Assembly (NCBI GenBank): GCA_965112735.1
Contig: OZ218960.1
Span: 930,001 to 994,000 of the forward strand
Direction of reading: 5' to 3'
From: Phaeosaccion multiseriatum
Taxonomy: Eukaryota; Protista; Ochrophyta, other classes
DNA: 64,000 nucleotides
Below are positions 25,661 through 51,277 of the stretch, piece after piece. Made by a program: the position numbers and the translations under genes. Position 1 is the first letter of the stretch. Every line of letters begins with the position of its first letter. The notes beneath the pieces were generated by a model. It was not told the DNA's origin, did not search any database, and saw only the letters and a program-made list of their open reading frames with translations.

Positions 25661-28600
25661 ATGAAATCGTATTCGAGCGTGCTCGCAGCCTCTGTGCTGG
25701 GGGCACTGCCGGCAACCCTCGCCCGCGGCGGCGTCTGGACCAACCAGCCGTCCAAGCCGCAGCCCACTTGCGACCCCAACAAGGACCCAGAGAGGACCTT
25801 CAACCCTGTCGCGGGCTGCCCCGACGTCGTGCCTGATGGCGCCTTCGTGCCAACCGGGTGAGTGAGAGTGAGGGAGGGGGGGAAGGGCGCACACCAGCGA
25901 GGGAGGGAGAGGGCGAGGGGGTTGTTGCGTAGGGCGAGAGAAGGCTTGAACATTCAAGGGTGCTGGGCAACGCTCGTGTCAGGCCTGGCGTAATCTTTGC
26001 CAGCCCCCCCGTCCTCCAATGATGTGTTGGTGCCTGCTGTGGCACCTGCATCCTTGCCCTGTTGCTTATCACATCCTTCTTGCCCCCCTTCCCTCGGGCA
26101 GGTCCTACTGGTACCCCACTGGAGGCGGCGACTCCGATTCCGGCAAGGGAGGCAAGGGAGGCAAGAAGGGAGACAAGGGCAAGGGCAAGAAGGGAGACGA
26201 CAAGGGCAAGGGAGACAAGGGCAAGGGTTTCTCGAAGACGTTCAGCTACTCCTACAAGAACTGGAACAGGGCTCTGAACGGGGAGAGGTCTCTCAGCTAC
26301 AAGTACTACAATAACTACTACTACACCAAGTCCAAAAGTGAGTGTGGGCGCGGGTGGGTCGGTGATGTGTGGGCTGGGCGCAGAGGGGGGGGGATGAGGG
26401 ACATTGCAGATTCGGGGAAAGGGGAGGGGACTGGCCCATGACTGCCTCACTCCCATGGACACGTCATTAAGAATGGCTCACTCACATCGGGTCCTCCTCA
26501 CCCCACCCCTAACCCCGACCTCTACCAGGCAAGGGAGACTCCGATTCCGGCAAGGGAGGCAAGAAGGGAGACGACAAGGGCAAGGGCAAGAAGGGAGACG
26601 ACAAGGGCAAGGGCAAGAAGGGAGACGATAAGGGCAAGGGCAAGAAGGGAGACGACAAGGGCAAGGGCAAGAAGGGAGACGACAAGGGCAAGGGCAAGAA
26701 GGGAGACTCCGATTCCGGCAAGGGAGGCAAGAAGGGAGACAAGGGTACGTGCGGAGGAGTAGGAGCATGCTTGCCTATCTTCTACCCGTCTGTCTCAAGA
26801 GATCATCCCTCTGCTGCCTCATCTGGCCCTCGCACTGTCCCCTCCGGAGCCCTGCACACGCACCCACTCACTCCCCACACTCTCTTTATCCCGTCCCTCC
26901 CCCACTCCTTACAGGCGGAAAGAAGACTGACCCCGAGCCCGAGCCCGAGAACTGCGACCAGCTGGCAGGCTTCGACTACGACATCAGCGGCTTCAACGGC
27001 GACCTCGGCAGCTGCTGCCCCATCAACAACCTGCCTCCCTGCGACTGCGTGCCCGACGGCGATTGCTTCCCCGACTTCGACATCTGTGAGGAGGCTGGCG
27101 CCGTCGACAGCCTCGACTTTGAGATCAGGTGTGTGTGGGGGGGGGTGAATTGGGTGTGTACGCATGCCATTTGTTCGTGTCTGAGTGTGGCCCGAGTGAA
27201 GTGGAGTTGGATGTTTGTGGGGAGCGGGTGAGTGGAGCGAGCTCACCACCCCGCGCTGTGTGGTCACGCCTGCCTTTTACGTGACCCACCCACCCCCACA
27301 CTTACTGAACCCTCCGTTCACACTGCGCCTCCTTGCCTCCTCCTCCGTCTTTATCAGGTGCGACAACACTGGCCTGATGCGCTTCACCGGCACCGGAGGA
27401 TTCTTGAGCGGTGCCGACTACTCCTTCAGCGGCAACGAGTGCGCCGACGCCGACCTCTCCATCAGCGAGGACGGCAACCAAGTGAACATTCAAGTCAGCG
27501 TCGAGGGCGCCGTGGTGCAGGAGGTTGGTATTGTAATTGACTGCACCGCCCCCGTCGTCATCGGAGAGCAGGTCGGATTCGTGTACATCAGCGGTGGAGA
27601 CGGCTTCTCGTGCCCCGAGCCCCCTGTAGGCTTCCCGTGCCCTCCCCCGGCCCCTACACCCGCGGTGAGTTGGACAATACGAAGAGAGAGAGGAAACACA
27701 AGGCGAATATCAGTAGAGAGGGGAAGAGGAGGAAACCCAAGACGAATATCAACAGACAGAGGAGAAGGCAGCAAACTAGCGAAACATCAGACACATAGAT
27801 TGAAATTTCGCATTGGTGTCTTCCTCTTCCCTAAGTGGGGGAGGCGGAAGCTATACTGCGGTGGGACCTGTGGGTTTGCGCACGCGCAACTGGGTCTTGC
27901 TGCCTTTATCCTCATGCTTTGCGCGCTCCATCCCTTACTTTCCTTCTCCTCCTCCTCCCCCTCCTTCCTCTCGTGTGACCTCCTCAGCCCCAGCCTGCCC
28001 CCACCATGGCCACCACCCCCGCCCCCGTCTCCGACTGCGACACTTGCTGCAAGGACGACGTGGAGCTGGACGCCGACGACGCGAGTTTCTGCCGCTTCGC
28101 GCCCGACACCACCGGCGTGTGCGACTCTGACTCTGGTGATGACGCCGATGGCTGCGACGGCGCCCCTGCAGGCTGCCGTGAGCGCGGAACCTACGGTGGT
28201 GTTGAGCTCGAGGACTGCCCCGCTCCCTCAACTCCCGCGGTGAGTGAAACACAAATGGAAATCAAGTCGCTGTGGTATCTCTGTTGTGAGCTTGGCTGGG
28301 GCGTCGTGGGGGCTCTTAAGACGCGCAGCTGTTCCAGCGCTCATCCTCCTCTCCTCCCTCTGACCCTAACCCCGTCCCCCTCTCCTCCTGCCTTGTCATT
28401 TCCTCAGCCTGTTCCGGAGCCCACCCCCGCCCCCGTCTCCGACTGCGACACTTGCTGCAAGGACGACGTAGAGCTGGACGCCAACGACGCGAGTTTCTGC
28501 CGCTTCGCGCCCGACACCACCGGCGTGTGCGACTCTGACTCTGGTGATGACGCCGATGGCTGCGACGGCGCCCCTGCAGGCTGCCGTGAGCGCGGAACCT

Positions 28601-31600
28601 ACGGTGGTGTTGAGCTCGAGGACTGCCCCGCTCCCCCAACTCCCGCGGTGAGTGAAACACAAATGGAAATCAAGTCGCTGTGGTATCTCTGTTGTGAGCT
28701 TGGCTGGGGCGTCGTGGGGGCTGTTAATACGCGCAGCATTTCCAGCGCTCATCCTCCTCTCCTCCCTCTAACCCTAACCCCGTCCCCCTCTCCTCCTGCC
28801 TTGTCATTTCCTCAGCCTGTTCCGGAGCCCACCCCCGCCCCCGTCTCCGACTGCGACACTTGCTGCAAGGACGACGTAGAGCTGGACGCCAACGACGCGA
28901 GTTTCTGCCGCTTCGCGCCCGACACCACCGGCGTGTGCGACTCTGACTCTGGTGATGACGCCGATGGCTGCGACGGCGCCCCTGCAGGCTGCCGTGAGCG
29001 CGGAACCTACGGTGGTGTTGAGCTCGAGGACTGCCCCGCTCCCCCAACTCCCGCGGTGAGTGAAACACAAATGAAATCAAGTCGCTGTGGTATCTTTGTT
29101 GTAAGCTTGGCTGGGGCGTCGTGGGGGCTCGTAAGACGCGTAACTGTTCCAGCACTCATCCTCCCCTCCTCCCTCTAACCCTAACCCCGCCCCCCTCTCC
29201 TCCTGCCTTGTCATTTCCTCAGCCCGTTCCGGAGCCCACCCCCGCCCCCGTCTCCGACTGCGACACTTGCTGCAAGGACGACGTAGAGCTGGACGCCAAC
29301 GACGCGAGTTTCTGCCGCTTCGCGCCCGACACCACCGGCGTGTGCGACTCTGACTCTGGTGATGACGCCGATGGCTGCGACGGCGCCCCTGCAGGCTGCC
29401 GTGAGCGCGGAACCTACGGTGGTGTTGAGCTCGAGGACTGCCCCGCTCCCCCAACTCCCGCGGTGAGTGAAACACAAATGAAATCAAGTCGCTGTGGTAT
29501 CTTTGTTGTAAGCTTGGCTGGGGCGTCGTGGGGGCTCGTAAGACGCGTAACTGTTCCAGCACTCATCCTCCCCTCCTCCCTCTAACCCTAACCCCGCCCC
29601 CCTCTCCTCCTGCCTTGTCATTTCCTCAGCCCGTTCCGGAGCCCACCCCCGCCCCCGTCTCCGACTGCGACACTTGCTGCAAGGACGACGTAGAGCTGGA
29701 CGCCAACGACGCGAGTTTCTGCCGCTTCGCGCCCGACACCACCGGCGTGTGCGACTCTGACTCTGGTGATGACGCCGATGGCTGCGACGGCGCCCCTGCA
29801 GGCTGCCGTGAGCGCGGAACCTACGGTGGTGTTGAGCTCGAGGACTGCCCCGCTCCCCCAACTCCCGCTGTGAGTGAAACACAAATGGAAATCAAGTCGC
29901 TGTGGTATCTCTGTTGTGAGCTTGGCTGGGGCGTCGTGGGGGCTGTTAATACGCGCAGCATTTCCAGCGCTCATCCTCCTCTCCTCCCTCTAACCCTAAC
30001 CCCGCCCCCCTCTCCTCCTGCCTTGTCATTTCCTCAGCCCGTTCCGGAGCCCACCCCCGCCCCCGTCTCCGACTGCGACACTTGCTGCAAGGACGACGTA
30101 GAGCTGGACGAGAACGACGCGAGTTTCTGCCGCTTCGCGCCCGACACCACCGGTGTGTGCGACTCTGACTCTGGTGATGACGTGTCCGATGGCTGCGACG
30201 GCGCCCCTGCAGGCTGCCGTGAGCGCGGAACCTACGGTGGTGTTGAGCTCGAGGACTGCCCCGCCCCCCCAACTCCCGCGGTGAGTGAAACACAAATGAA
30301 ATCAAGTCGCCGTAGCATCTCTGTTGTGAGCTTGGCTGGGGCGTCGTGGGGGCTCTTAAGACGTGCAACTGTTCCAGCGCTCATCCCTCTCTTCGTCCCC
30401 CTCTCCTCCTGCCTTGTCAAATGCTCAGCCCACCATGCCCGCCACCCCCGCCCCCACCTCCGACTGCGAGGATTGCTGCTCAAAGGGCGGGGTGGACGAT
30501 GGTGAGGAATTCTGCCGCTTCGGGTCCGACACCACCGGCGTGTGCGACTCTGACTCTAGCGCCGAGGGCTGCGCGGACGCCCCTGATGGCTGCCGTGTGC
30601 CCGGAACTTACGAAGACCCTATGACTGGACAGGATGTTGAGGTCAAGAACTGCCCGGCCCCCGTGCCTCCTCCCACGGTGAGTGATGAGTGAAGAAAACA
30701 AGAGAGATGGTGGCAAAGAGGGAGTTGGGGATTTGGTGACGAGAGGTGTGTTGCACTCCCGCGTGTGCTTGATTTAGTTAGCGCTCCACATGAGGAGCGA
30801 TCAGTGAAGAAACAAGAGGGAGGGGGGGTGGTGAGCGAAGTGAATTTGTAGTACACCCGCGTGGTCACGGTGTGTGTGATTTAGTAAGCGCGTCTTGCGT
30901 TTGCTGAACTGTGACTTGCGCTCTTGCTTGTGTACTGTCGTGTATACCCTTGCGCTCACCCCCTCCCCCCTATTCTCTGCACACCCTCTTCGCCGACCCG
31001 CCTCCTTCTCCTCCTCTCGCATCCTCAGCCCACGCCGCCTACGCCCACGCCGCCTACGCCCACGCCGCCTACGCCCACGCCGCCTACCCCGACACCGCCT
31101 ACTCCCACGCCTCCTACTCCCACGCCTCCTACTCCCACGCCTCCTACTCCCACGCCGCCTACGCCCACGCCTCCTACGCCCACGCCTCCTACGCCCACGC
31201 CGCCTACCCCCACGCCTCCTACCCCAACGCCGCCTACCCCGACACCGCCTACCCCCACCCCTCCTACGCCCACGCCTCCTACTCCCACGCCTCCTACCCC
31301 CACGCCTCCTACTCCCACGCCTCCTACTCCCACGCCTCCTACGCCCACGCCTCCTACGCCCACGCCTCCTACGCCCACGCCGCCTACCCCCACGCCTCCT
31401 ACCCCAACGCCGCCTACCCCGACACCGCCTACCCCCACCCCTCCTACGCCCACGCCGCCTACGCCCACGCCTCCTACGCCCACGCCGCCTACTCCCACGC
31501 CGCCATCCACGTGCTCGGAATGCTGCGCCCAAGGAGGAATCACCGACGAGACCCCCGGAACGTGCAAGTACGCCCCCGACCTCAGCGGCACGTGCGGCAG

Positions 31601-32420: not shown

Positions 32421-33110
32421 AGAGAGAGAGAGAAGGCAGGAATAGTCTGGACTGATTTGGGGCGTGGGGGGGGCTTGCGAATGCCGTTCTCTTTCCCTTC
32501 ACCTCCCCCTCTCCCTCTTCTGTTTAGACTAGACTAGTAAGATCGATTTTTTATCTTTTCGTAGCGTAGTGTAGTTGTGTGGCACACCTTGGGCGGAGAA
32601 AGAGCCTCATCAGCAAAAGCTTGCTTCCACTTTGCCAAGCTGACTCTCTCCCTCTTCGACAGGTCGACAATTGCCCACCTTTTTTTTCAATTAATGAATT
32701 TCGATTTCATTTCTAACTCTCCTTGTCTCTGGTTGACGTCATCATGTCATGTCTCGAAGGCCTTCCTCTCTCCTTGCTGTCTCCTTCGGCGTAATCCACC
32801 ACAAAGGTCCTCCTTGCGGGGGAGGAAGATTAGTGCCACACATACACACCGCCACCACGCACACACGCTCGCGCGCGCACACACACACCGAGGCAAGTGT
32901 CAGCGGCGCTTCATAATAAAGAGAGAGAGAGAAAACTTCTGAGCTCGGGCGTGGCTGGAGCAGGGACCAAAAGTGGAGATGGGGGTGGGTGGTCCTTGAC
33001 TTCGTCAGCCTGGCGTTTGCATACCCTTGATCCTTGACTTGGTAAGCATGGGGGTAAGCAGAGCAAAGTCGCAACCCACCTGCGCCTCAATTATTATAAA
33101 TGTTGTACTT

Positions 33111-33272
33111 CTGTGATTTCGCGGTCGAATGGCACTTTGACGCCCCGTGATTTTTTTTTTGACGCCAAATGACGATTACTTTGACCCCCCAAACGTCGTC
33201 AAAGTAATCGTCATTTGGCGTAAAAAAAAATTCACGGGGCGTCAAAAGTGCCACTCAACCGCGAAATCACAG
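33111..33272. mobile_element. Fold-back (hairpin) MITE-like insertion
   Basis: Near-perfect ~75-bp inverted arms (CTGTGATTTCGCGG...CCGCGAAATCACAG) around a ~12-nt loop. It is absent from the homologous site in the paralog 3 flank (~51035-51045). Confidence 0.8.
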
Positions 33273-33451
33273 TTTTATTTTAAAATGAAGTTCAAGTACT
33301 TGATAAATAAATGGGCAATTGCTGAGGATTTCATCGCCTTGTTTTGCTCTTGTGGGGCGCCCCACCCCCCCCATTGCCGCCCTGCGGTCAGCCAGCAGCT
33401 AAGTAGGCTAGAAGCGCCGCGGAGCTGCTGGCTAGGTGGCCTTGCTTCTCA

Positions 33452-34055: not shown

Positions 34056-37000
34056 ATGAAATCGTATTCGAGCTTGCTCGCAGCCTCTGTGCTGGGGGCA
34101 CTGCCGGCAACCCTCGCCTCCAAGCAGCCCACTTGCGACCCCAACAAGGACCCAGAGAGGACCTTCAACCCTGTCCCAGGCTGCCCCGACGTCGTGCCTG
34201 ATGGCGCCTTCGTGCCAACCGGGTGAGTGAGAGTGAGGGAGGGGGGCGAGGGCGCGCAAGAAGGAGAGGGCGAGGGGGTTGTTGCGTTGGGCGAGAGTGG
34301 GCTTGTACATTCAAGGGTGCTGGGAAACGCCCGTGTCAGGCCTGGCGTATCTTTGCCAGCTCCCCCCGCCTCCAATGATGTGTTGGTGCCTGCCACCTTC
34401 ATCCTTGTCCTGTTGCTTATCACATCCTTCTCCCCCCACCCACCCACCACCACCTTCGCTCGGGCAGGTCCTACTGGTACCCCCTTGGAGGCGGCGACTC
34501 CAGTTCCTCCGATTCCGGCAAGGGCAAGGGCAAGAAGGGAGACAAGGGCAAGGGCAAGAAGGGAGACAAGGGCAAGGGCAAGGGCAAGAAGGGAGACAAG
34601 GGCAAGGGCAAGAAAGGAGACAAGGGCAAGGGCAAGAAGGGAGACAAGGGCAAGGGCAAGAAGGGAGACAAGGGCAAGAAGGGAGACAAGGGCAAGAAGG
34701 GAGACAAGGGCAAGAAGGGAGACAAGGGCAAGGGCAAGAAGGGAGACAAGGGTACGTGCGAGGAGTAGGAGCATGCCTCCTTCCTTTTTTTCATTTCATC
34801 CAACTGGCTCTCACACCCGTCCCCTCCTGAGCCCCGCACGCACCCACCCACTCCCCCACTCTCATATTCCCTCCCTCCCACACTCCCTACAGGCGGAAAG
34901 GAGACTGACCCCGACCCCGAGCCCGAGAACTGCGACCAGCTGGCAGGCTTCGACTACGACATCAGCGGCTTCAACGGCGACCTCGGCAGCTGCTGCCCCA
35001 TCAACAACCTGCCTCCCTGCGACTGCGTGCCCGACGGCGATTGCTTCCCCGACTTCGACATCTGTGAGGAGGCTGGCGCCATCGACAGCCTCGACTTTGA
35101 GATCAGGTGTGTGTGGGTGTGGGTGAATTGGGTGTGTACGCATGCCATGTGTTTGTGTCTAAGTGTGGCCCGAGCGAAGTGGAGTTGGATGTTTGTGGGG
35201 AGCGGGTGAGTGGAGCGAGCTCACCACCCCGCGCTGTGTGGTCACGCCCTGCCTTTTACTTGCCCCGGCCGACCCCATACACTAACTGAACCCTCCGTTC
35301 ACACTGCGCCTCCTTGCCTCCTCCTCCGTCTTTATCAGGTGCGACAACACTGGCCTGATGCGCTTCAGCGGCGCCGGAGGATTCTTGAGCGGTGCCGACT
35401 ACTCCTTCAGCGGCAACGAGTGCGACAACGCCGACCTCTCCATCTTCGACGAAGGCAACCAAGTGAACGTTCAAGTCAGCGTCGAGGGCGCCGTGGTGCA
35501 GGAGGTTGGTATTGTAATTGACTGCACCGCCCCCGTCGTCATCGGAGAGCAGGTCGGATTCGTGTACATCAGCGGTGGAGACGGCTTCTCATGCCCTGAG
35601 CCCCCTGTAGGCTTCCCGTGCCCTCCCCCGGCCCCTACACCCGCGGTGAGTTGGACAATAAGAACAGAGGGAGGAAACACAAGGCGAATATCACCAGACG
35701 GAGGAGAATGCAGCAAACAATAGCGAAAATCATCAAAACACATGGGGAAGAGGAAGAAAAGTGGGAAATTTCAATCCAAGTGGGGGAGGCGGAAGCAATA
35801 CTGCGTGGGACCCTTCTTTGCTGTTGTGGGTTTGCGCACGGTGAAAAGAAATACTGGGTCTTGCTGCCTTTATCCTCATGCTTCGCGCGCTCCATCACTC
35901 ACTTTCCTTCTTCTCCTCCTCCTCCCCCTCCTTCCTCTCGTGTGACCTCCTCAGCCCCAGCCTGCCCCCACCATGGCCACCACCCCCGCCCCCGTCTCCG
36001 ACTGCGACACTTGCTGCAAGGACGACGTGGAGCTGGACGCCGACGACGCGAGTTTCTGCCGCTTCGCGCCCGACACCACCGGCGTGTGCGACTCTGACTC
36101 TGGTGATGACGTGTCCGATGGCTGCGACGGCGCCCCTGCAGGCTGCCGTGAGCGCGGAACCTACGGTGATGTTGAGCTCGAGGACTGCCCCGCCCCCCCA
36201 ACTCCCGCGGTGAGTGAAACACAAATGAAATCAAGTCGCTGTAGCATCTCTGTTGTGAGCTTGGTTGGGGCGTCGTGGGGGCCCCTTAAGACGCGCAGCT
36301 GCTCTAGCGCTCATCCTCCTCTCCTCCCTCTAACTCTAACCCCGTCCCCCTCTCCTCCTGCCTTGTCATTTCCTCAGCCCGTTGCGGAGCCCACCCCCGC
36401 CCCCGTCTCCGACTGCGACACTTGCTGCAAGGACGACGTGGAGCTGGACGCCGACGACGCGAGTTTCTGCCGCTTCGCGCCCGACACTACCGGCGTGTGC
36501 GACTCTGACTCTGGTGATGACGTGTCCGATGGCTGCGACGGCGCCCCTGCAGGCTGCCGTGAGCGCGGAACGTACGGTGATGTTGAGCTCGAGGACTGCC
36601 CCGCCCCCCCAACTCCCGCGGTGAGTGAAACACAAATGAAATCAAGTCGCTGTAGCATCTCTGTTGTGAGCTTGGTTGGGGCGTCGTGGGGGCTCCTTAA
36701 GACGCGCAGCTGCTCTAGCGCTCATCCTCCTCTCCTCCCTCTAACTCTAACCCCGTCCCCCTCTCCTCCTGCCTTGTCATTTCCTCAGCCCGTTGCGGAG
36801 CCCACCCCCGCCCCCGTCTCCGACTGCGACACTTGCTGCAAGGACGACGTAGAGCTGGACGCCGACGACGCGAGTTTCTGCCGCTTCGCGCCCGACACCA
36901 CCGGCGTGTGCGACTCTGACTCTGGTGATGACGCCGATGGCTGCGACGGCGCCCCTGCAGGCTGCCGTGAGCGCGGAACCTACGGTGATGTTGAGCTCGA

Positions 37001-39779
37001 GGACTGCCCCGCCCCCCCAACTCCCGCGGTGAGTGAAACACAAATGAAATCAAGTCGCTGTAGTATCTCTGTTGTGAGCTTGGTTGGGGTGTCGTGGGGG
37101 CTCTTAAGACGCGTAACTGTTCCAGCACTCATCCTCCTCTCCTCCCTCTAACCCTAACCCCGTCCCCCTCTCCTCCTGCCTTGTCATTTCCTCAGCCCGT
37201 TGCGGAGCCCACCCCCGCCCCCGTCTCCGACTGCGACACTTGCTGCAAGGACGAGGTGGAGCTGGACGCCGACGACGCGAGTTTCTGCCGCTTCGCGCCC
37301 GACACCACCGGCGTGTGCGACTCTGACTCTGGTGATGACGCCGATGGCTGCGACGGCGCCCCTGCAGGCTGCCGTGAGCGCGGAACCTACGGTGATGTTG
37401 AGCTCGAGGACTGCCCCGCCCCCCCAACTCCCGCGGTGAGTGAAACACAAATGAAATCAAGTCGCTGTAGCATCTCTGTTGTGAGCTTGGTTGGGGCGTC
37501 GTGGGGGCTGTTAATACGCGCAACGCTCATCCTCCTCTCCTCCCTCTAACCCTCTCTTCGTCCCCCTCTCCTCCTGCCTTGTCAAATGCTCAGCCCACCA
37601 TGCCCGCCACCCCCGCCCCCACCTCCGACTGCGAGGTTTGCTGCTCGAAGGGCGGGGTGGACGATGGTGAGGAATTCTGCCGCTTCGGGTCCGACACCAC
37701 CGGCGTGTGCGACTCTGACTCTAGCGCCGAGGGCTGCGCGGACGCCCCTGATGGCTGCCGTGTGCCCGGAACTTACGAAGACCCTATGACTGGACAGGAT
37801 GTTGAGGTCAAGAACTGCCCGGCCCCTGTCCCCCCTCCTCCCACGGTGAGTGATGAGTGAAGAAAACAAGAGAGAGGGGGGTGGGGTGGTGGCAAAGACG
37901 GAGTTGGGGATTTGGTGACGAGAGGTGTGTTGCACTCCCGCGTGTGCTTGATTTAGTAGCGCTCCACATGCGGAGCAATCAGTGAAGAATACAAGAGAGA
38001 GGGTGGGGGTGGTGGCAAAGAGGGAGTTGGGGATTTGGTGACGAGAGGTGTGTTGCACTGCCGCGTGTGTTTGATTTAGTTAGCGCTCCACATGCGGAGC
38101 AATCAGTGAAGAATACAAGAGGGAGTTGGGGGGTGGTGAGCGAAGTGGATTTGTAGTACACCGGCGCATGTGTGTGTGTGATTTAGTAAGCGCGTCTGCG
38201 TTTGCTGAACTGTGACTTGCGCTCTTGCTTGTGTACTGTCTTGTTTACCCTTGCGCTCACCCCCTCCCCCCTATTTTCTGCACACCCTCTTCGCCGACCC
38301 GCCTCCTTCTCCTCCTCCTCGCGTCTTCAGCCCGCGCCGCCTACCCCTGCGCCGCCTACGCCCGCGCCGCCAACCCCTGCGCCGCCTACCCCTGCACCGC
38401 CTACCCCTGCACCGCCTACGCCTGCACCGCCTACCCCCGCGCCGCCTACCCCTGCGCCGCCTACGCCCACGCCTCCTACTCCCACGCCGCCTACTCCCAC
38501 GCCTCCTACTCCCACACCTCCTACCCCCACGCCTCCCACCCCCACGCCTCCTACTCCCACGCCGCCTACGCCCACGCCGCCTACTCCCACGCCTCCTACG
38601 CCCACGCCTCCTACCCCGACACCGCCTACCCCCACGCCTCCTACGCCCACGCCGCCTACCCCCACGCCTCCTACCCCCACCCCTCCTACGCCCACGCCGC
38701 CTACCCCCACGCCTCCTACGCCCACGCCGCCTACTCCCACGCCTCCTACCCCCACGCCGCCTACCCCCACGCCGCCTACGCCCACGCCTCCTACCCCCAC
38801 GCCTCCTACTCCCACGCCGCCTACCCCCACGCCGCCATCCACGTGCTCGGACTGCTGCGCCCAAGGAGGAATCACCGACGAGACCCCCGGAACGTGCAAG
38901 TACGCCCCCGACCTCAGCGGCGCCTGCGGTAGGGACCCTTCGGCCGTGGGCTGCGACGGTGCTCCCACAGGCTGCCGCCTGGCCGGCGCCCCGATCGACG
39001 ACAACAACTCTGTCACGGCCTGCGCCGCCGACTGCGACACTTGCGCAGCGACTTGCGCTGCGAGCGACATTGTCTGCGACTTGAACGACGTCTGCGACGG
39101 AGTGTTCGAGGACGACAGATGCGGCGCCGGCGGCCTTGTCAACTGCAAGATCTGCGACCCTAGCAAGGGTGAATGCGACTGCCCGATTAAGGAACCCAAC
39201 ACTTGCCACACCGATCTGGATTGCGTTGTGGACTTCGACAGTACGTTTTTAGACAAGGAAGGAAAGACGGCATTAGAAGTGCTCGAGGGCTTCAGCAAGT
39301 CGCCCAAGTGCTTCCCGAACTGCCCCTTCGGCCACGACCCCGCCTACGCGGGCCTGTTCTGCAACTCTTACAACGTCAACTTCAAGTGCGGCCACTGCTG
39401 GAATGACGTTGAGGCTGCCGAAGATTTCCTCCTTTCTAAATTCGCAATGGATCGTGGCCTGGACTGCACCAAGATCCTGCTCTGCGACGAGAGCAGGCGC
39501 GGAACGCAGTCCGGAAACTTCTGCAATGGCGTTTCTGGCCCCAACCCCGACGACGTCGTTGGCCCCAAGGAGGTGGCAACCATGTCTGCTGGTGCCGATG
39601 ATGCCGAGCGCTCTTCCACTGCTTCCTCCGCGAGCGGTGTGTCCATGGCTGCTGTGGGCGGCCTCGTGGCTGGTGTTGTGGGCGTCGCTGGTGTGGGCGC
39701 TGCCGTGGCCTGGAGGAAGACCACCAACAGGGAGAAGCTCGGTGGAAGGGAGACCCCCGCCAGCGAGTGGGCCTTTTAA
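34056..39779 (+). CDS. Secreted type-I membrane Cys-rich/Pro-Thr-rich modular surface protein, paralog 2
   Basis: ATG at 34056 ([21 protein letters not shown]). Same architecture as paralog 1, with four module exons (starts 35955, 36378, 36789, 37196), a variant module at 37594, and a final exon 38331-39779 ending ETPASEWAF. Confidence 0.85.
35955..37435 (+). repeat. Tandem exon+intron module array (4 exons) in paralog 2
   Basis: ~407-411 bp near-identical units. Confidence 0.95.
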
Positions 39780-40716
39780 AGAGAGAGAGAAGGCAGGGAT
39801 AGTCTGGACTGATTTGGGGCGTGGGGGGGGGCTTGCGAATGCCTTTTTCTTTCCCTTCACCTCCCCCTCTCCCTCTCCCTCTCCCGTTGTAGACTAGTAA
39901 GATCGATTTTTTATCTTTTCGTAGCTAGCGTAGTGTAGTTGTGTGGCACACCTTGGGCGGAGAAAGAGCCTCATCAGCAAAAGCTTGCTTCCACTTTGCC
40001 AAGCTGACTTTCTCCCTCTTCGACAGGTCGACAATTGCCCACCTTTTTTTTTCAATCAATGAATTTCGATTTCATTTCTCAACTCTCCTTGTCTCTGGTT
40101 GGTGTCATCATGTCATGCCTCGAATGCCTTCCTCTCTCCTTGCTGTCTCCTTCGGCGCAATCCACCACAAGCAAATGTCGTCCTTGTGGGGGAGAAAGAT
40201 TAGTGCCACACACAAAAACACACACCAGTCGCCACCAGCCACCACCACCACCAACACACATCAAGGCAAGTGTCAGCGGCGCTTCATAATCACAAGAGAG
40301 AGAGAGAAAACTTTTGAGCTCGGGCGTGGAGCAGGGACCAAAAGTGGAGATGGGGGGTGGCTGGGTGGCTGGTCCTTGATTTCGTCAGCCTGGCGTATGC
40401 ATACCCTTGATCCTTGACTTCGTAAGCGTGGGCGTAGCTAAGCAGAGCGATTTTATAGTTCATTCATTAAATGGGCAATTGCTGAGGATTTCGCCTTGCT
40501 TTGCTCTTGTGGCTGGGGCGCCCCACCCCCCCCATTGCCGCCTTGACTTGCGGTCAGCCAGCAGCTAAGTAGGCTAGAAGCACCGCGGAGCTGCTGGCTG
40601 GGTGGCCTTGCTTCTCAACGTGGATGGCAGTAGACGGCCTTGAGCTCTTGTGGATGACCGTGGATGGATGGATGAAGTCATATCAATGTAGCTATGGATG
40701 AGCTCCTCCTCCCTGC

Positions 40717-40957
<241 letters not shown>

Positions 40958-41071
40958 CTAGGGGGAGGGAGGGAGAGAACGACAAGAGAAAGGGCAAGAA
41001 AGAGAACAAAAGTATGAGGAGAGATGAGAGAGGGAGATAAGAGAGAGAGAGATCGGCCCTGGACAAGGTTA

Positions 41072-42440
41072 CAGTATGCGCCGACCATAATCAGTGATCA
41101 GCCCGGCTAGCGCCGGCCGTAGCTAATCGTCAGTGATAAGCCCGGCTAGCGCCGGCCGTAATCAGTAATCAGGCCGGCTGACTGATCGGCTGGTGGCGCA
41201 CGAGCGAGGCGTACTCTAGCTACGGCCGCTCGACTACTCATCGATGTGCTTCGCCAGCAGTCCCTTTTGTACCCTTGAACCCTTTGCGCATAGCCATGTC
41301 GCCCATCGGCCAGTACTGGACAGCCTCACGAAGCAACAAGCAACATGATGCCGAATACGATTTTACATTTGCTTTAGTAGTACTCCTGGCTACTAGCTAA
41401 TGGATGTCTCGATTCGATGCGTGGCTCTTAGCTAGGGTTAGGGTTAGATGCAAACTATGTGACCACGTGACGTGGGCAATTTGCTGCCCTCACATGGCTG
41501 GCGCTCTGACCCGACCCGATGCAGCCTGCCTGGGCAGCCATAACCAATCTCCCTGTGGCACCTCCGTAAGAGGGGGCTTGAGGACCCGAGGTGGTACTCT
41601 GCAGTACAGCCTTCGCCATCACAGAGTATCGTTGTTTGTCCTGCCAGCCACCTGGTCGATATGGCAGACGGTGCACGCTGTGCCAACCCTTCGCTTCTTG
41701 CCCTTCTTGTGCAGCCATGTCTGCGTAGCTCCCAGGACCCCCTCTCGCTCGCACACGGGATGATGTCGTGGTCACCATGGCTCCCACCCTCTGTTGGTGT
41801 AGCGTGGTTCCTTCTTCGTCATCGCTTTCTGAGGACGGCGCTTCTTCTTCTTCGTCTTCCTCTTCTTCCGCGTCGTCGACTGAGCGTAGGCCTCTACTCT
41901 CCCTGTCGATCCTCTCCCTGCTTGCTGAGCGAATTCACGGCATCGCCCATGGCTACATGCTCCTCGTCAGTAACGGTAAAGCCCATCAAGCGCCTGGTCA
42001 GAAGCGACTGGCTGCTGCTCACATTGCTGGTGCTGTCTTTCTTGCTGCTGCCTGCTGCCTGCGCCGCCCTCTTTTTTTTTTTTTTTGTCTGTTGAAAGTC
42101 AGTATTATGTCAATGGCCCAGGCCCACGCAAAAATTCCCGTTTCACGATTGCTATTACCTTGTCCATGCGTCTCAGGCTGGCTTACATTTTCCTTGTCCA
42201 TGCGTGTAGCTACTCCTGTCCTATATGTGGAGAGCAACGTGACTCTTTACATCTCTCCCTTTCTTCACCTCCAACTGTTTCGCCCAGCCATCATGTGGCC
42301 TTGTTCGAACGTCGCAAAAACTTCGTCCCAGCCCCCCCCGGGCCAAGCAAGGGCACGCAAGGGGGCGAGAAACTGAGACTGGCCGGCTGTGCGACCGTGC
42401 CGAGCGACCATAATCAGGAAACAGGCTGGCTCAGCAATCA
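41072..42440 (-). mobile_element. Decayed insertion (probable transposon remnant) with terminal ~32-bp tandem repeats and a PHD-finger relic
   Basis: Not present at the equivalent junction between paralogs 1 and 2. Repeats TAATCAGTGATCAGCCCGGCTAGCGCCGGCCG lie at 41088-41180, and CGACCATAATCAG recurs at ~42405. The minus strand carries broken coding sequence. Confidence 0.55.
41521..41676 (-). pseudogene. Frameshifted PHD finger (C4HC3) coding relic
   Basis: Pieces CTVC, [15 protein letters not shown] and [13 protein letters not shown] occur in different frames. They can be reconstructed to [48 protein letters not shown]. Confidence 0.8.
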
Positions 42441-42903
42441 GGCCGTCGGCCCCATGCACGCCTAGCGGCCTAGGCCTATTTGGGAAAATGTCCCGGCCTA
42501 GCGAGGGCCGTAGTCTAGGTCCTCGGCCTATTTATATGCCGCCGCCTACTAGGCGGCCTAAGGCAGCCAGACGCCAGCCAACTAGGCGGACACGGTGGGA
42601 GTGCCCAGAGTGCAAAGAGTAGTCAGTTTCATTGCATGGGATTGGAAGGGAGCAGTAGACTTGGTTCGTGTTGTCTCTTCCGCCTCGCTGGCCCTACGAG
42701 GAGTGCAGACCTACAGGTGTGCTGCTACCCAGCCACTGGCTGGGCGGCACCACGCACGCGCCCACGGTCACTGGTGGGAGGCTGCCTAGAGGCGGGCTAT
42801 ATAGGCCGCCTAGGATTGAAAAGTGAGCGGCCTAGAGCGGCCGAAGGCCGAGCGGCCTAGCGGCCTAGAGCAAAACCGCTAGGCGTGCACGGGGCCGAAG
42901 GCC
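42441..42903. mobile_element. Non-autonomous TIR DNA transposon (MITE)
   Basis: 28-bp terminal inverted repeats: GGCCGTCGGCCCCATGCACGCCTAGCGG (42441-42468) and CCGCTAGGCGTGCACGGGGCCGAAGGCC (42876-42903), matching at 26/28. Many subterminal GGCCTAG motifs; no credible coding sequence. Confidence 0.8.
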
Positions 42904-43164
42904 GTCTCCTGGGAAAAGAGGGCTTGCTGAGAGAGACACATTCTTCATTCTTCGTTCTAAATCATATTTCGGGCCTCTCTAATTCGATTCATCTTCGCGC
43001 CATTTCCCCCTTTTTTTCAGCTGCTTTTTTTGAGAGTGAATGTGAAAGCAAACCTCGAAGATGGAAAAGTGACCTTTGCTTTTCCAGCACCCCTTCTAAG
43101 ATGAGGATGTCTGGGAGTGTGGTCACAACACACTTTAGCGTCTTGACAGCAGCCTATTGCTGTC

Positions 43165-46100
43165 ATGAAATCGTATTCGAGCTTGCTCGCAGCCTCTGTG
43201 CTGGGGGCACTGCCGGCAACCCTCGCCTCCAAGCAGCCCACTTGCGACCCCAACAAGGACCCAGAGAGGACCTTCAACCCTGTCCCAGGCTGCCCCGACG
43301 TCGTGCCTGATGGCGCCTTCGTGCCAACCGGGTGAGTGAGAGTGAGGGAGGGGGGCGAGGGCGCGCAAGAAGGAGAGGGCGAGGGGGTTGTTGCGTTGGG
43401 CGAGAGTGGGCTTGTACATTCAAGGGTGCTGGGAAACGCCCGTGTCAGGCCTGGCGTATCTTTGCCAGCTCCCCCCGCCTCCAATGATGTGTTGGTGCCT
43501 GCCACCTTCATCCTTGTCCTGTTGCTTATCACATCCTTCTCCCCCCACCCACCCACCACCACCTTCGCTCGGGCAGGTCCTACTGGTACCCCCTTGGAGG
43601 CGGCGACTCCAGTTCCTCCGATTCCGGCAAGGGCAAGGGCAAGAAGGGAGACAAGGGCAAGGGCAAGAAGGGAGACAAGGGCAAGGGCAAGGGCAAGAAG
43701 GGAGACAAGGGCAAGGGCAAGAAAGGAGACAAGGGCAAGGGCAAGAAGGGAGACAAGGGCAAGGGCAAGAAGGGAGACAAGGGCAAGAAGGGAGACAAGG
43801 GCAAGAAGGGAGACAAGGGCAAGAAGGGAGACAAGGGCAAGGGCAAGAAGGGAGACAAGGGTACGTGCGAGGAGTAGGAGCATGCCTCCTTCCTTTTTTT
43901 CATTTCATCCAACTGGCTCTCACACCCGTCCCCTCCTGAGCCCCGCACGCACCCACCCACTCCCCCACTCTCATATTCCCTCCCTCCCACACTCCCTACA
44001 GGCGGAAAGGAGACTGACCCCGACCCCGAGCCCGAGAACTGCGACCAGCTGGCAGGCTTCGACTACGACATCAGCGGCTTCAACGGCGACCTCGGCAGCT
44101 GCTGCCCCATCAACAACCTGCCTCCCTGCGACTGCGTGCCCGACGGCGATTGCTTCCCCGACTTCGACATCTGTGAGGAGGCTGGCGCCATCGACAGCCT
44201 CGACTTTGAGATCAGGTGTGTGTGGGTGTGGGTGAATTGGGTGTGTACGCATGCCATGTGTTTGTGTCTAAGTGTGGCCCGAGCGAAGTGGAGTTGGATG
44301 TTTGTGGGGAGCGGGTGAGTGGAGCGAGCTCACCACCCCGCGCTGTGTGGTCACGCCCTGCCTTTTACTTGCCCCGGCCGACCCCATACACTAACTGAAC
44401 CCTCCGTTCACACTGCGCCTCCTTGCCTCCTCCTCCGTCTTTATCAGGTGCGACAACACTGGCCTGATGCGCTTCAGCGGCGCCGGAGGATTCTTGAGCG
44501 GTGCCGACTACTCCTTCAGCGGCAACGAGTGCGACAACGCCGACCTCTCCATCTTCGACGAAGGCAACCAAGTGAACGTTCAAGTCAGCGTCGAGGGCGC
44601 CGTGGTGCAGGAGGTTGGTATTGTAATTGACTGCACCGCCCCCGTCGTCATCGGAGAGCAGGTCGGATTCGTGTACATCAGCGGTGGAGACGGCTTCTCA
44701 TGCCCTGAGCCCCCTGTAGGCTTCCCGTGCCCTCCCCCGGCCCCTACACCCGCGGTGAGTTGGACAATAAGAACAGAGGGAGGAAACACAAGGCGAATAT
44801 CACCAGACGGAGGAGAATGCAGCAAACAATAGCGAAAATCATCAAAACACATGGGGAAGAGGAAGAAAAGTGGGAAATTTCAATCCAAGTGGGGGAGGCG
44901 GAAGCAATACTGCGTGGGACCCTTCTTTGCTGTTGTGGGTTTGCGCACGGTGAAAAGAAATACTGGGTCTTGCTGCCTTTATCCTCATGCTTCGCGCGCT
45001 CCATCACTCACTTTCCTTCTTCTCCTCCTCCTCCCCCTCCTTCCTCTCGTGTGACCTCCTCAGCCCCAGCCTGCCCCCACCATGGCCACCACCCCCGCCC
45101 CCGTCTCCGACTGCGACACTTGCTGCAAGGACGACGTGGAGCTGGACGCCGACGACGCGAGTTTCTGCCGCTTCGCGCCCGACACCACCGGCGTGTGCGA
45201 CTCTGACTCTGGTGATGACGTGTCCGATGGCTGCGACGGCGCCCCTGCAGGCTGCCGTGAGCGCGGAACCTACGGTGATGTTGAGCTCGAGGACTGCCCC
45301 GCCCCCCCAACTCCCGCGGTGAGTGAAACACAAATGAAATCAAGTCGCTGTAGCATCTCTGTTGTGAGCTTGGTTGGGGCGTCGTGGGGGCCCCTTAAGA
45401 CGCGCAGCTGCTCTAGCGCTCATCCTCCTCTCCTCCCTCTAACTCTAACCCCGTCCCCCTCTCCTCCTGCCTTGTCATTTCCTCAGCCCGTTGCGGAGCC
45501 CACCCCCGCCCCCGTCTCCGACTGCGACACTTGCTGCAAGGACGACGTGGAGCTGGACGCCGACGACGCGAGTTTCTGCCGCTTCGCGCCCGACACTACC
45601 GGCGTGTGCGACTCTGACTCTGGTGATGACGTGTCCGATGGCTGCGACGGCGCCCCTGCAGGCTGCCGTGAGCGCGGAACGTACGGTGATGTTGAGCTCG
45701 AGGACTGCCCCGCCCCCCCAACTCCCGCGGTGAGTGAAACACAAATGAAATCAAGTCGCTGTAGCATCTCTGTTGTGAGCTTGGTTGGGGCGTCGTGGGG
45801 GCTCCTTAAGACGCGCAGCTGCTCTAGCGCTCATCCTCCTCTCCTCCCTCTAACCCTAACCCCGTCCCCCTCTCCTCCTGCCTTGTCATTTCCTCAGCCC
45901 GTTGCGGAGCCCACCCCCGCCCCCGGCTCCGACTGCGACACTTGCTGCAAGGACGACGTAGAGCTGGACGCCGACGACGCGAGTTTCTGCCGCTTCGCGC
46001 CCGACACCACCGGCGTGTGCGACTCTGACTCTGGTGATGACGCCGATGGCTGCGACGGCGCCCCTGCAGGCTGCCGTGAGCGCGGAACCTACGGTGATGT

Positions 46101-49100
46101 TGAGCTCGAGGACTGCCCCGCCCCCCCAACTCCCGCGGTGAGTGAAACACAAATGGAAATCTGTAGTATCTCTGTTGTGAGCTTGGTTGGGGTGTCGTGG
46201 GGGCTCTTAAGACGCGTAACTGTTCCAGCACTCATCCTCCTCTCCTCCCTCTAACCCTAACCCCGTCCCCCTCTCCTCCTGCCTTGTCATTTCCTCAGCC
46301 CGTTGCGGAGCCCACCCCCGCCCCCGTCTCCGACTGCGACACTTGCTGCAAGGACGACGTGGAGCTTGACGAGAACGACGCGAGTTTCTGCCGCTTCGCG
46401 CCCGACACCACCGGCGTGTGCGACTCTGACTCTGGTGATGACGTGTCCGATGGCTGCGACGGCGCCCCTGCAGGCTGCCGTGAGCGCGGAACCTACGGTG
46501 ATGTTGAGCTCGAGGACTGCCCCGCTCCCCCAACTCCCGCGGTGAGTGAAACACAAATGAAATCAAGTCGCTGTAGTATCTCTGTTGTGAGCTTGGTTGG
46601 GGCGTCGTGGGGGCTGTTAAGACGCGCAGCTGTTCCAGCGCTCATCCTCCTCTCCTCCCTCTAACCCTAACCCCGTCCCCCTCTCCTCCTGCCTTGTCAT
46701 TTCCTCAGCCCGTTGCGGAGCCCACCCCCGCCCCCGTCTCCGACTGCGACACTTGCTGCAAGGACGAGGTGGAGCTTGACGAGAACGACGCGAGTTTCTG
46801 CCGCTTCGCGCCCGACACCACCGGCGTGTGCGACTCTGACTCTGGTGATGACGTGTCCGATGGCTGCGACGGCGCCCCTGCAGGCTGCCGTGAGCGCGGA
46901 ACCTACGGTGATGTTGAGCTCGAGGACTGCCCCGCTCCCCCAACTCCCGCGGTGAGTGAAACACAAATGAAATCAAGTCGCTGTAGTATCTCTGTTGTGA
47001 GCTTGGTTGGGGCGTCGTGGGGGCTGTTAAGACGCGCAGCTGTTCCAGCGCTCATCCTCCTCTCCTCCCTCTAACCCTAACCCCGTCCCCCTCTCCTCCT
47101 GCCTTGTCATTTCCTCAGCCCGTTGCGGAGCCCACCCCCGCCCCCGTCTCCGACTGCGACACTTGCTGCAAGGACGAGGTGGAGCTTGACGAGAACGACG
47201 CGAGTTTCTGCCGCTTCGCGCCCGACACCACCGGCGTGTGCGACTCTGACTCTGGTGATGACGTGTCCGATGGCTGCGACGGCGCCCCTGCAGGCTGCCG
47301 TGAGCGCGGAACCTACGGTGATGTTGAGCTCGAGGACTGCCCCGCTCCCCCAACTCCCGCGGTGAGTGAAACACAAATGAAATCAAGTCGCTGTAGCATC
47401 TCTCTTGTGAGCTTGGTTGGGGCGTCGTGGGGGCTGTTAAGACGCGCAGCTGCTCTAGCGCTCATCCTCCTCTCCTCCCTCTAACTCTAACCCCGTCCCC
47501 CTCTCCTCCTGCCTTGTCATTTCCTCAGCCCGTTGCGGAGCCCACCCCCGCCCCCGTCTCCGACTGCGACACTTGCTGCAAGGACGACGTAGAGCTGGAC
47601 GCCAACGACGCGAGTTTCTGCCGCTTCGCGCCCGACACCACCGGCGTGTGCGACTCTGACTCTGGTGATGACGTGTCCGATGGCTGCGACGGCGCCCCTG
47701 CAGGCTGCCGTGAGCGCGGAACCTACGGTGATGTTGAGCTCGAGGACTGCCCCGCTCCCCCAACTCCCGCGGTGAGTGAAACACAAATGAAATCAAGTCG
47801 CTGTAGCATCTCTCTTGTGAGCTTGGTTGGGGCGTCGTGGGGGCTGTTAAGACGCGCAGCTGCTCTAGCGCTCATCCTCCTCTCCTCCCTCTAACTCTAA
47901 CCCCGTCCCCCTCTCCTCCTGCCTTGTCATTTCCTCAGCCCGTTGCGGAGCCCACCCCCGCCCCCGTCTCCGACTGCGACACTTGCTGCAAGGACGACGT
48001 GGAGCTGGACGAGAACGACGCGAGTTTCTGCCGCTTCGCGCCCGACACCACCGGTGTGTGCGACTCTGACTCTGGTGATGACGTGTCCGATGGCTGCGAC
48101 GGCGCCCCTGCAGGCTGCCGTGAGCGCGGAACCTACGGTGATGTTGAGCTCGAGGACTGCCCCGCTCCCCCAACTCCCGCGGTGAGTGAAACACGAATGA
48201 AATCAAGTCGCTGTGGTATCTCTGATGTGAGCTTGGTTAGGGCGTCGTGGGGGCTGTTAAGACGCGCAACGGTTCCAGCGCTCATCCTCCTCTCGTCCCT
48301 CTAACCCTCTCTTCGTCCCCCTCTCCTCCTGCCTTGTCAAATGCTCAGCCCACCATGCCCGCCACCCCCGCCCCCACCTCCGACTGCGAGGATTGCTGCT
48401 CGAAGGGCGGGGTGGACGATGGTGAGGAATTCTGCCGCTTCGGGTCCGACACCACCGGCGTGTGCGACTCTGACTCTAGCGCCGAGGGCTGCGCGGACGC
48501 CCCTGATGGCTGCCGTGTGCCCGGAACTTACGAAGACCCTATGACTGGACAGGATGTTGAGGTCAAGAACTGCCCGGCCCCTGTCCCCCCTCCTCCCACG
48601 GTGAGTGATGAGTGAAGAAAACAAGAGAGAGGGGGGTGGGGTGGTGGCAAAGACGGAGTTGGGGGTTTGGTGACGAGAGGTGTGTCGCACTATGATTTAG
48701 TAGCGCTGCACATGAGGAGCGATCAGTGAAGAAAACAAGAGGGAGTTGGGGGGTGGTGAGCGAAGTGGATTTGTAGTACACCGGCGCATGTGTGTGTGTA
48801 TGATTTAGTAAGCGCGTCTGCGTTTGCTGAACTGTGACTTGCGCTCTTGCTTTTGACTGTCTTGTTTACCCTTGCGCTCACCCCCTCCCCCCTATTCTCT
48901 GCACACCCTCTTCGCCGACCCGCCTCCTTCTCCTCCTCCTCGCGTCTTCAGCCCGCGCCGCCTACCCCTGCACCGCCTACGCCCGCGCCGCCAACCCCTG
49001 CGCCGCCTACCCCTGCGCCGCCAACCCCTGCACCGCCTACGCCCGCGCCGCCAACCCCTGGACCGCCTACGCCTGCACCGCCTACGCCTGCACCGCCTAC

Positions 49101-50346: not shown

Positions 50347-51277
50347 AGAGAGAGAGAGAAGGCAGGAATAGTCTGGACTGATTTGGGGCGTGGGGGGGGC
50401 TTGCGAATGCCGTTCTCTTTCCCTTCACCTCCCCCTCTCCCTCTTCTGTTTAGACTAGACTAGTAAGATCGATTTTTTATCTTTTCGTAGCGTAGTGTAG
50501 TTGTGTGGCACACCTTGGGCGGAGAAAGAGCCTCATCAGCAAAAGCTTGCTTCCACTTTGCCAAGCTGACTTTCTCCCTCTTCGACAGGTCGACAATTGC
50601 CCACCTTTTTTTTTCAATCAATGAATTTCGATTTCATTTCTCAACTCTCCTTGTCTCTGGTTGGTGTCAACATGTCATGCCTCGAAGCCCTTCCTCTCTC
50701 CTTGCTGTCTCCTTCGGCGCAATCCACCACAAGAGTCGTCCTTGTGGGGGAGAAAGATTAGTGCCACACACAAAAACACCCACCAGTCGCCACCACCACC
50801 ACCACCAACACACATCAAGGCAAGTGTCATCGGCGCTTCATAGCCAATCAAGAGAGAGAGAGAAAACTTTTGAGCTCGGGCGTGGCTGGAGCAGGGACCA
50901 AAAGTGGAGATGGGGGTGGGTGGTCCTTGACTTCGTCAGCCTGGCGTATGCATACCCTTGATCCTTGACTTCGTAAGCATGGGCGTAAGCAGAGCAAAGT
51001 CGCAACCCACCTGCGCCTCAATTGTCAAATTTTGTACTTTTAAGTACTTGATTTTAGTTCATTCATTTAAATGGGCAATTGCTGAGGATTTCATCGGCTT
51101 GCTTTGCTCTTGTGGGGCGCCCCACCCCCCCCATTGCCGCCCTGCGGTCAGCCAGCAGCCAAGTAGGCTAGAAGCGCCGCGGAGCTGCTGGCTGGGTGAC
51201 CTTGCTTCTCAACGTGGATGGCAGTAGACGGCCTTGAGCTCTCGTGGATGACCGTGGTTTTAGCTCCTCCTCCCTGC

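Follow-up and report, generated by a model that had tools for sequence, protein, structure and literature searches.

Organization of the locus

The DNA examined here, referred to as the window, is a stretch of 64,000 nucleotides from the ochrophyte Phaeosaccion multiseriatum (C11:930001-994000, i.e. contig OZ218960.1), taken from a eukaryotic genome assembly of 67 Mb in 22 contigs with ~58% G+C. The window is rich in period-4 microsatellites and, as judged by self-comparison, contains three tandem units of ~9 kb each. The homology of units 1 and 3 to unit 2 ends at 41023 and restarts at 42965. The block in between is composed of the relic of a transposon, designated family A, of a miniature inverted-repeat transposable element (MITE) and of short flanks. 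Within the relic, the minus strand of 41521-41675 is most likely what is left of a C-terminal PHD finger, now a pseudogene, in a dead cut-and-paste transposon copy that lacks its front part and was killed by stereotyped NN-GC-NN insertions, a reading to which we assign a probability of roughly 0.85. In such an insertion, the two copies of a duplicated dinucleotide are separated by GC, with a net gain of 4 bp. The features of the block are the following (strand given where one applies):

41024-42964: block restricted to the middle ~9-kb tandem unit, consisting of relic, MITE and short flanks (window self-comparison, junction sequences)
41053-41074: family-A terminal inverted repeat (TCGGCCCTGGACAAGGTTACAG), the end beside the gene's 3′ end, recognized by its by-eye likeness to the 21-bp end of family B (TCGGCCCCTGACAAGGTTCTG)
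41080-41190: subterminal array of a ~35-bp motif (...GCCGGCCGTAATCAGTAATCAGGCCGGCT...), from the sequence and the motif positions
41490-42081, minus strand: decayed remnant of the last open reading frame (ORF), homologous to residues ~205-356 of the 359-residue family-B frame (tblastn)
41521-41675, minus strand: remnant of the C4HC3 PHD finger, bounded by its first and last Cys codons (frames, copy alignment, read-through with breaks masked)
42082-42445: rest of the relic, showing weak similarity to 5′ sequence of a family-B-like copy and terminated by an array-type motif (42400-42445)
42446-42898: 453-bp MITE whose ends begin TCGGCCCC, as in family B; the terminal 8-mer occurs in the window only at 42446 and 42891

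Read support was taken from Logan contigs of four runs of one sample; these contigs drop rare variants, and their single-copy word depth is ~100. Numerous contigs diverge immediately ahead of 41053. The ~35-bp motif of the subterminal array reaches a word depth of 10^4-10^5 compared to the single-copy value, which places it among the most abundant short repeats of the genome. By eye, its unit has a GCCGGCT...CGCCGGCC core in common with the 32-bp arrays found at both ends of family B. The ORF remnant ends with a stop codon at 41490-41492, and its tblastn pieces, spread over three frames, are collinear with the protein. At the DNA level, the homology between the window and the family-A copy on contig C10 extends over 41154-42081. 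Two telomere-type CCCTAA units at ~41437-41450, in the 3′ untranslated part of family A, are also present in the C10 copy and absent from the copies on C3 and C6.

The window copy is thus a truncated or internally deleted relic that kept approximately the last 150 codons, and it is probable that this site never coded for a complete reader protein. The original prediction, which was made from the sequence letters of the window, had stated that the block once encoded a chromatin reader of the kind found in some transposons. The PHD assignment and the transposon origin both hold, the latter being demonstrated in the sister family B by inverted ends, target duplications and multiple copies, whereas the block itself is front-truncated and a composite of relic and MITE.

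The MITE is flanked by 6-bp target duplications, AGGCCG, at 42440-42445 and 42899-42904, and has at least 40 copies in the genome. Its bases 147-356 match the end of a further PHD-ending ORF (L016:2089-2295; PHD-1st_NSD, 35.6 bits). On this match, the MITE is a deletion derivative of a third lineage of PHD-ending elements. A PHD finger thus closes the ORF in three lineages that have the same type of end.

The PHD finger and its relatives

In order to read through the lesions of the window copy, an X was placed at every break. The result is one open frame with a stop nine codons past the last Cys; the first Cys codon is at 41673-41675 and the last at 41521-41523 (plus-strand coordinates). The ligands follow the pattern C-x2-C-x12-C-x4-C-x4-H-x2-C-x17-C-x2-C, with ligand codons 6 and 7 located at breaks. 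Both this spacing and the C4-H-C3 order agree with the general form of PHD fingers, C-x2-C-x(9-21)-C-x(2-4)-C-x(4-5)-H-x2-C-x(12-46)-C-x2-C. It had been predicted that removal of three insertions and restoration of one G would yield a C4HC3 PHD finger. The minus-strand strings on which that prediction was built are present where claimed, the three frames break as described, and the spacing matches that of the masked read-through.

The uninterrupted pieces of the window finger (14, 19 and 14 residues) are too short for a Pfam scan, and the domain was identified through its relatives. The paralogues carry the same ligand residues, split over two frames. In the C10 copy, the second half of the finger alone, 32 residues in one frame, scores 25.6 bits against the Pfam PHD model (PF00628), for which the gathering threshold is 24 bits. 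The intact ORF of family B covers the whole model (positions 1-47) with 37.8 bits and an E-value of 1.9e-9; its finger is intact, has the spacing x13/x4/x4/x2/x17/x2, and matches the solved PHD fingers of WSTF, KDM5A/B, PHF21A, CHD4 and AIRE. Finally, the masked window read-through aligns with the intact family-B C-terminus in one piece (76 columns, 52.6% identity, pairwise E 4.9e-25). A PHD match by chance is no serious rival.

The window copy and its relatives resemble known PHD fingers (PF00628; WSTF, KDM5A/B, PHF21A and CHD4) in ligand order and spacing, in the Trp two residues ahead of the seventh ligand, and in the L-x-PPL...P-x-G-x-W motif, and the relatives score above the curated Pfam threshold. 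The window copy differs from them in being a pseudogene with seven breaks. Furthermore, unlike the fingers of host chromatin factors, it lies at the extreme C-terminus of a transposon-borne propeller protein (see below). Histone binding by the family finger is predicted from its family membership. In live copies, the finger would tie the transposon protein to a particular state of the histone H3 tail, and such tethering would bias where or when the element acts. A short GT-AG intron upstream of the finger was considered and rejected, as family B reads straight through this region; the frame change there is a frameshift caused by the insertion at 41712.

Family B, the younger sister family, is a dispersed repeat of ~3.9 kb with four copies at 98% identity on C3, C10, C12 and C7, and older copies at 87-90% identity. 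The similarity between copies stops at perfect 21-bp inverted repeats, namely TCGGCCCCTGACAAGGTTCTG and its complement, starting TCGGCCCC. These perfect ends are found in three copies, while the C7 copy is right-truncated, and three copies are flanked by 6-bp direct duplications (GAACCT, ATCCTT and AGAAGC). The 32-bp tandem arrays lie immediately inside both ends. By its anatomy, family B is a cut-and-paste DNA transposon. Family A has about the same length, and a second gene is seen in neither family. Its PHD ORFs are intact, reach 359 residues and align lengthwise with the window frames. The C10 copy of family A has retained the whole gene in decayed form, with 42-45% amino-acid identity to family B.

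Upstream of the PHD ORF, family B has a 570-residue ORF (ORF1) for which an exhaustive search returned 44 metagenome relatives, all unnamed. Two of these, of 1,064 and 1,072 residues, have the homologous region in a central position and end with a PHD finger, an arrangement that supports the two family-B ORFs as likely parts of one spliced protein of ~1,000 residues. A search of a protein atlas with ORF1 gave a weak NHL lead. Confirmation came from the PDB, where a profile built on 13 relatives matches six-bladed NHL propellers, among them those of Pizza6, PknD, NHLRC2 and TRIM71 (best E 2.2e-7). The single-sequence structure prediction of ORF1 was unusable (mean pLDDT 39.7), and a word-based protein search with the PHD ORF returned nothing in the allowed length range, a weak result given the length limits. 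Pfam and the sequence and profile searches of the PDB returned NHL and PHD matches for the family-A/B protein and no recognizable catalytic domain of a transposase; nor was there a match to a catalytic domain of the P-element type. It may be that the family-A/B elements are non-autonomous or that they carry the protein as cargo.

The lack of a recognizable transposase domain, together with the frequent occurrence of NHL and PHD domains in host proteins, is what could be said for a different origin of the PHD sequence, namely a fragment of a host gene family that was spread by segmental duplication and was not mobile. We consider this very improbable. The four copies at 98% identity are on four contigs and their homology ends at 21-bp inverted repeats with 6-bp duplications, and they share their terminal 8 bases and the length of their duplications with an abundant MITE.

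In the order of its parts, i.e. a propeller of the six-bladed type, acidic stretches and a terminal PHD finger in a transposon setting, the family protein is like RAG2. In RAG2, a Kelch propeller is followed by an acidic hinge and, at the C-terminus, by a PHD finger as the reader of H3K4me3; the protein is the partner of RAG1, a recombinase derived from a transposase. The resemblance is an analogy only: the propeller of RAG2 is of the Kelch type whereas that of the family is of the NHL type, there is no sequence similarity between the two proteins, and the RAG1/Transib-type ends and 5-bp duplication are absent from the family elements.

Other PHD-bearing and inserted sequences were encountered in these searches. 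Matches to half of the PHD finger at 50-52% identity are present at C3:609215, C4:4900269, C8:349466, C13:327695 and C16:2004266, and at each of the five loci the match lies within an open frame of exactly 485 residues; the loci probably represent another multi-copy PHD-bearing element. In addition, the C3 copy of family B contains a 735-bp insertion (L026:3694-4430; C3:3069693-3070429) with a 3-base junction overlap, CCT, which may be a target duplication. The insertion holds most of a 245-residue ORF that has no Pfam match, and other copies of the insert are located near the C12 copy of family B in the opposite orientation.

Lesions of the window copy and the NN-GC-NN signature

The window copy was compared with three other copies, those on C10 and C3 having been obtained by a DNA search of the genome and that on C6 added by protein search. 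The frame of the window copy has seven breaks, namely six 4-bp insertions, which are derived, and a 1-bp deletion. The lesions, all given for the minus strand, are the following:

41495-41500, minus strand: +4 insertion CA-GC-CA, private to the window, immediately ahead of the stop codon (not in C10, C3 or C6; exact Logan contig)
41526-41531, minus strand: +4 insertion AG-GC-AG, private to the window, within the final C-x2-C (copy alignment; exact Logan contig)
41535-41540, minus strand: +4 insertion TG-GC-TG, private to the window, at the seventh zinc ligand and no plain tandem duplication (copy alignment; exact Logan contig)
41583-41584, minus strand: 1-bp deletion, loss of a G from the TGC codon of the sixth ligand (other copies read GGGTGCCTC)
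41645-41650, minus strand: +4 insertion TG-GC-TG, private to the window, in the spacer that separates the first C-x2-C from the third Cys (copy alignment)
41712-41717, minus strand: +4 insertion TG-GC-TG upstream of the finger, non-duplicative, also in C3 and absent from C10 and C6 (alignment)
41927-41932, minus strand: +4 insertion TC-GC-TC, further upstream in the ORF remnant (alignment of window and C10; tblastn frame change)

Three of these +4 insertions (41495-41500, 41712-41717 and 41927-41932) were missing from the earlier list of lesions, which had also proposed that intact relatives would lack the three 4-mers it named. In the four-way alignment, C10, C3 and C6 are without all three and keep the G; where the window reads GGGTCCTC, all of them read GGGTGCCTC. 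Near the last C-x2-C, removal of two 4-mers makes the window identical to its paralogues, which is a better solution than the gap placement of the aligner. All six insertions have the NN-GC-NN form (minus-strand pairs: TG three times, AG, CA and TC), and those at 41535, 41712 and 41927 are not exact tandem duplications. The window copy also carries an in-frame AAG duplication. Over the ORF part (255 columns without gaps), 5 substitutions are private to the window branch, compared to 6-7 indel events.

From the four close copies alone, parsimony cannot root the events that are private to the window. The earlier argument that the reading frame polarises these events as insertions becomes sound with family B as an in-frame sister family and outgroup: it is in frame throughout and has the same ligand spacing, so the differences that break the frame are derived. 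By the same token, a 5-bp difference (GCGGY) between the fourth Cys and the His, common to C10, C3 and C6 and lacking in the window, is an insertion in those three copies. They are therefore dead at this point as well, and only the window keeps the original junction.

The events private to the window could in principle be deletions in the other copies, or assembly or sequencing artefacts, which would fit with the fact that at 41569-41722 only paralogue-type contigs were found, such that the window version with its 41645 insertion and missing G is uncovered. Such a gap is expected if the bubbles of near-identical copies were collapsed, and proves nothing either way. This explanation is hardly credible as a whole, given that an exact 347-base Logan contig of single-copy-like depth covers 41222-41568 and spans three of the insertions, that the intact outgroup family is in frame with the same ligand spacing, and that a 30-copy MITE family polarises this class of event as insertions. 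In the alignment of that family, with the majority state taken as the polarity, +4 accounts for 12 of 41 insertion events, compared to 2 deletions of 4 bp; 9-10 of the 12 fit NN-GC-NN (by eye, from the printed contexts).

To characterize the signature, an all-against-all comparison of 313 kb of repeats was carried out and gave 45 distinct 4-bp indels, 28 of which fit NN-GC-NN. The fit extends to all 12 exact tandem duplications and to 16 of the 33 non-duplications; for the latter, P is ~4e-20 under a generous null. Each other core is found at most 5 times among the non-duplications, mostly as a second parse of the same events; of the 17 indels outside the NN-GC-NN form, just 4 can be assigned to any other core. 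No 2-base core was seen for indels of 3, 5 or 6 bp in the same comparison. The duplicated pair of the 28 events is TG/CA in 14, TA in 6, AG/CT in 3 and another pair in 5, and the next base is G in 19. The hexamers TGGCTG and TAGCTA are enriched in the window (2.9x and 5.3x, respectively), a result of little weight because microsatellites inflate all NN-core-NN hexamers. We found no description of such a signature in the literature.

The frequency of the events varies among sequences. In neutral repeats, they amount to ~3-6% of the number of substitutions: the MITE family, for instance, has ~10 events vs. 162 singleton substitutions, or ~300 differences from the consensus. In the dead region of 2 kb the proportion is ~10x higher, and ~12 events fall within 39.9-42.8 kb. 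The relic has 6 events in 440 bp vs. ~12 substitutions, the dead middle tandem unit has 5 vs. 95 substitutions, and the window copy of the MITE contributes two (42561-42566 and 42730-42735). Private NN-GC-NN insertions of the middle unit were placed at 39922, 40435, 40510, 40739 and 40955; in the count of five private +4 events for this unit, four fit the form. The one at 40739-40744 creates an early stop in an ORF of the dihydrolipoyl-dehydrogenase type. Detection of +4 events is possible only in duplicated DNA, and their concentration in dead duplicated DNA is in part a matter of ascertainment. Both the density in the relic and the recurrence of one event in two copies point to a hot spot.

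One explanation for the 4-bp insertions would be that they are ordinary tandem duplications, arising through slippage or through fill-in of the 4-base stagger left by topoisomerase II, with GC being incidental. Trapped Top2 reportedly initiates de novo duplications through end joining in yeast, according to the title of a preprint (bioRxiv 10.1101/2020.05.03.075358), and a related paper on human tumours (PMC8795545) is said to deal with small duplications that involve topoisomerase II and end joining. The events resemble such 2-4-bp duplications in being small insertions (≤4 bp) that would arise at staggered breaks. About half of them are exact duplicates of the neighbouring 4 bases, and the window is full of period-4 microsatellites. 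In the other half (16 of 28), however, the inserted bases are not copies of adjacent sequence and yet all have GC, and a GC that was absent from the original sequence can be produced neither by plain slippage nor by 4-base-stagger fill-in. Moreover, the exact duplications are GC-centred in 12 of 12 cases, when a rough calculation for random 4-mers gives about a third, and indels of 3, 5 and 6 bp show no comparable core. We therefore regard tandem duplication as unlikely to be the source of the signature.

In a second explanation, the NN-GC-NN insertions would be scars left when a cut-and-paste element is excised, one that makes a 2-bp duplication on entry and whose GC ends are cut 2 bases inside; perfect pairing of its two GC overhangs would then yield NN-GC-NN. 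Precedent comes from Tc1 and Tc3, where the cut is staggered and excision leaves the target TA duplicated around 2 terminal bases. Like these footprints, the events described here have a net gain of 4 bp and a duplicated dinucleotide around a 2-base core; unlike them, they always have GC as the core, and the pair is mostly TG/CA or TA and includes others too. Scars of this kind would explain why 28 of 28 events have a 2-bp duplication and a GC that is self-complementary and never varies, and local hopping would account for the cluster at 39.9-42.8 kb. On the other hand, the pair is not restricted to TA (TG/CA 14, TA 6, others 8), six scars in 440 bp need an extreme local rate of insertion, and the 41712 event, which is in both the window and C3, needs a hot spot or gene conversion. 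Furthermore, the large insertions in the 313 kb include no matching element, i.e. none that has GC at its ends and duplicates 2 bp of its target. As it stands, the excision-scar model is a possible but doubtful one. A hairpin-type scar of the form NNG-C-NNG (a 3-bp duplication and one palindromic base) was also tried and rejected; it fits 19 of the 28 events and fails when the next base is not G.

We favour a mechanism in which a break with a 2-base stagger would be closed via a GC joint, e.g. as the scar of an element with complementary GC overhangs that is cut two bases inside its GC termini. Tentatively, the signature may be the product of a dedicated and undescribed process, leaving either the scars of an unrecognised and very active cut-and-paste element with self-complementary GC overhangs or the marks of a break-repair pathway whose frameshifting insertions are directed preferentially at dead or repeated DNA.

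Several points weigh against the overall interpretation given at the outset. No second inverted end of the window relic was found in the block and no target duplication is demonstrable for it, such that its mode of arrival is inferred. The window version of 41569-41722 is uncovered by read contigs. The joining of the two family-B ORFs draws on the architecture of relatives and not on transcripts, the searches described above recognised no transposase catalytic domain, and the element with GC ends was not encountered among the large insertions.

Neighbouring repeats and implications

Further repeats and gene remnants are present in the tandem units. The middle unit contains a dead copy of a dihydrolipoyl-dehydrogenase-type gene at 39922-40960, with a Pyr_redox_dim match of 52.7 bits on the minus strand at 40745-40948. 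Tandem units of 408-411 bp are found in 19 copies in three arrays (27862-30350, 35829-37505 and 44938-48556); these units are very alike and have no +4 events, unlike the adjoining dead DNA. A palindromic MITE at 33106-33308 is present in unit 1 only, with ends CTGTGATTTCGCGG...CCGCGAAATCACAG, and its arms have more than 100 matches in the genome, frequently as inverted pairs. Finally, a TG-GC-TG insertion is located at 32952-32957 and at 50883-50888, i.e. in units 1 and 3 and not in unit 2. Units 1 and 3 are almost identical near these positions, and their near-identity around a common insertion suggests gene conversion or a recent copy.

The relic as such is an ordinary dead fragment of a transposon. 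What is unusual is the insertion signature it carries and the group of propeller-PHD transposons to which it belongs. The outgroup and the reading frame together provide an independent test of polarity for the GC-centred insertions. Almost all of the disabling lesions in the window copy are of one type and, together with the count of 28 out of 45, this constitutes a sharp mutational signature, whose source could be a mobile element or a repair pathway that has so far escaped recognition. As for the transposons, the fact that three lineages end their ORF with a PHD finger suggests that chromatin reading is a conserved part of the group's transposition.

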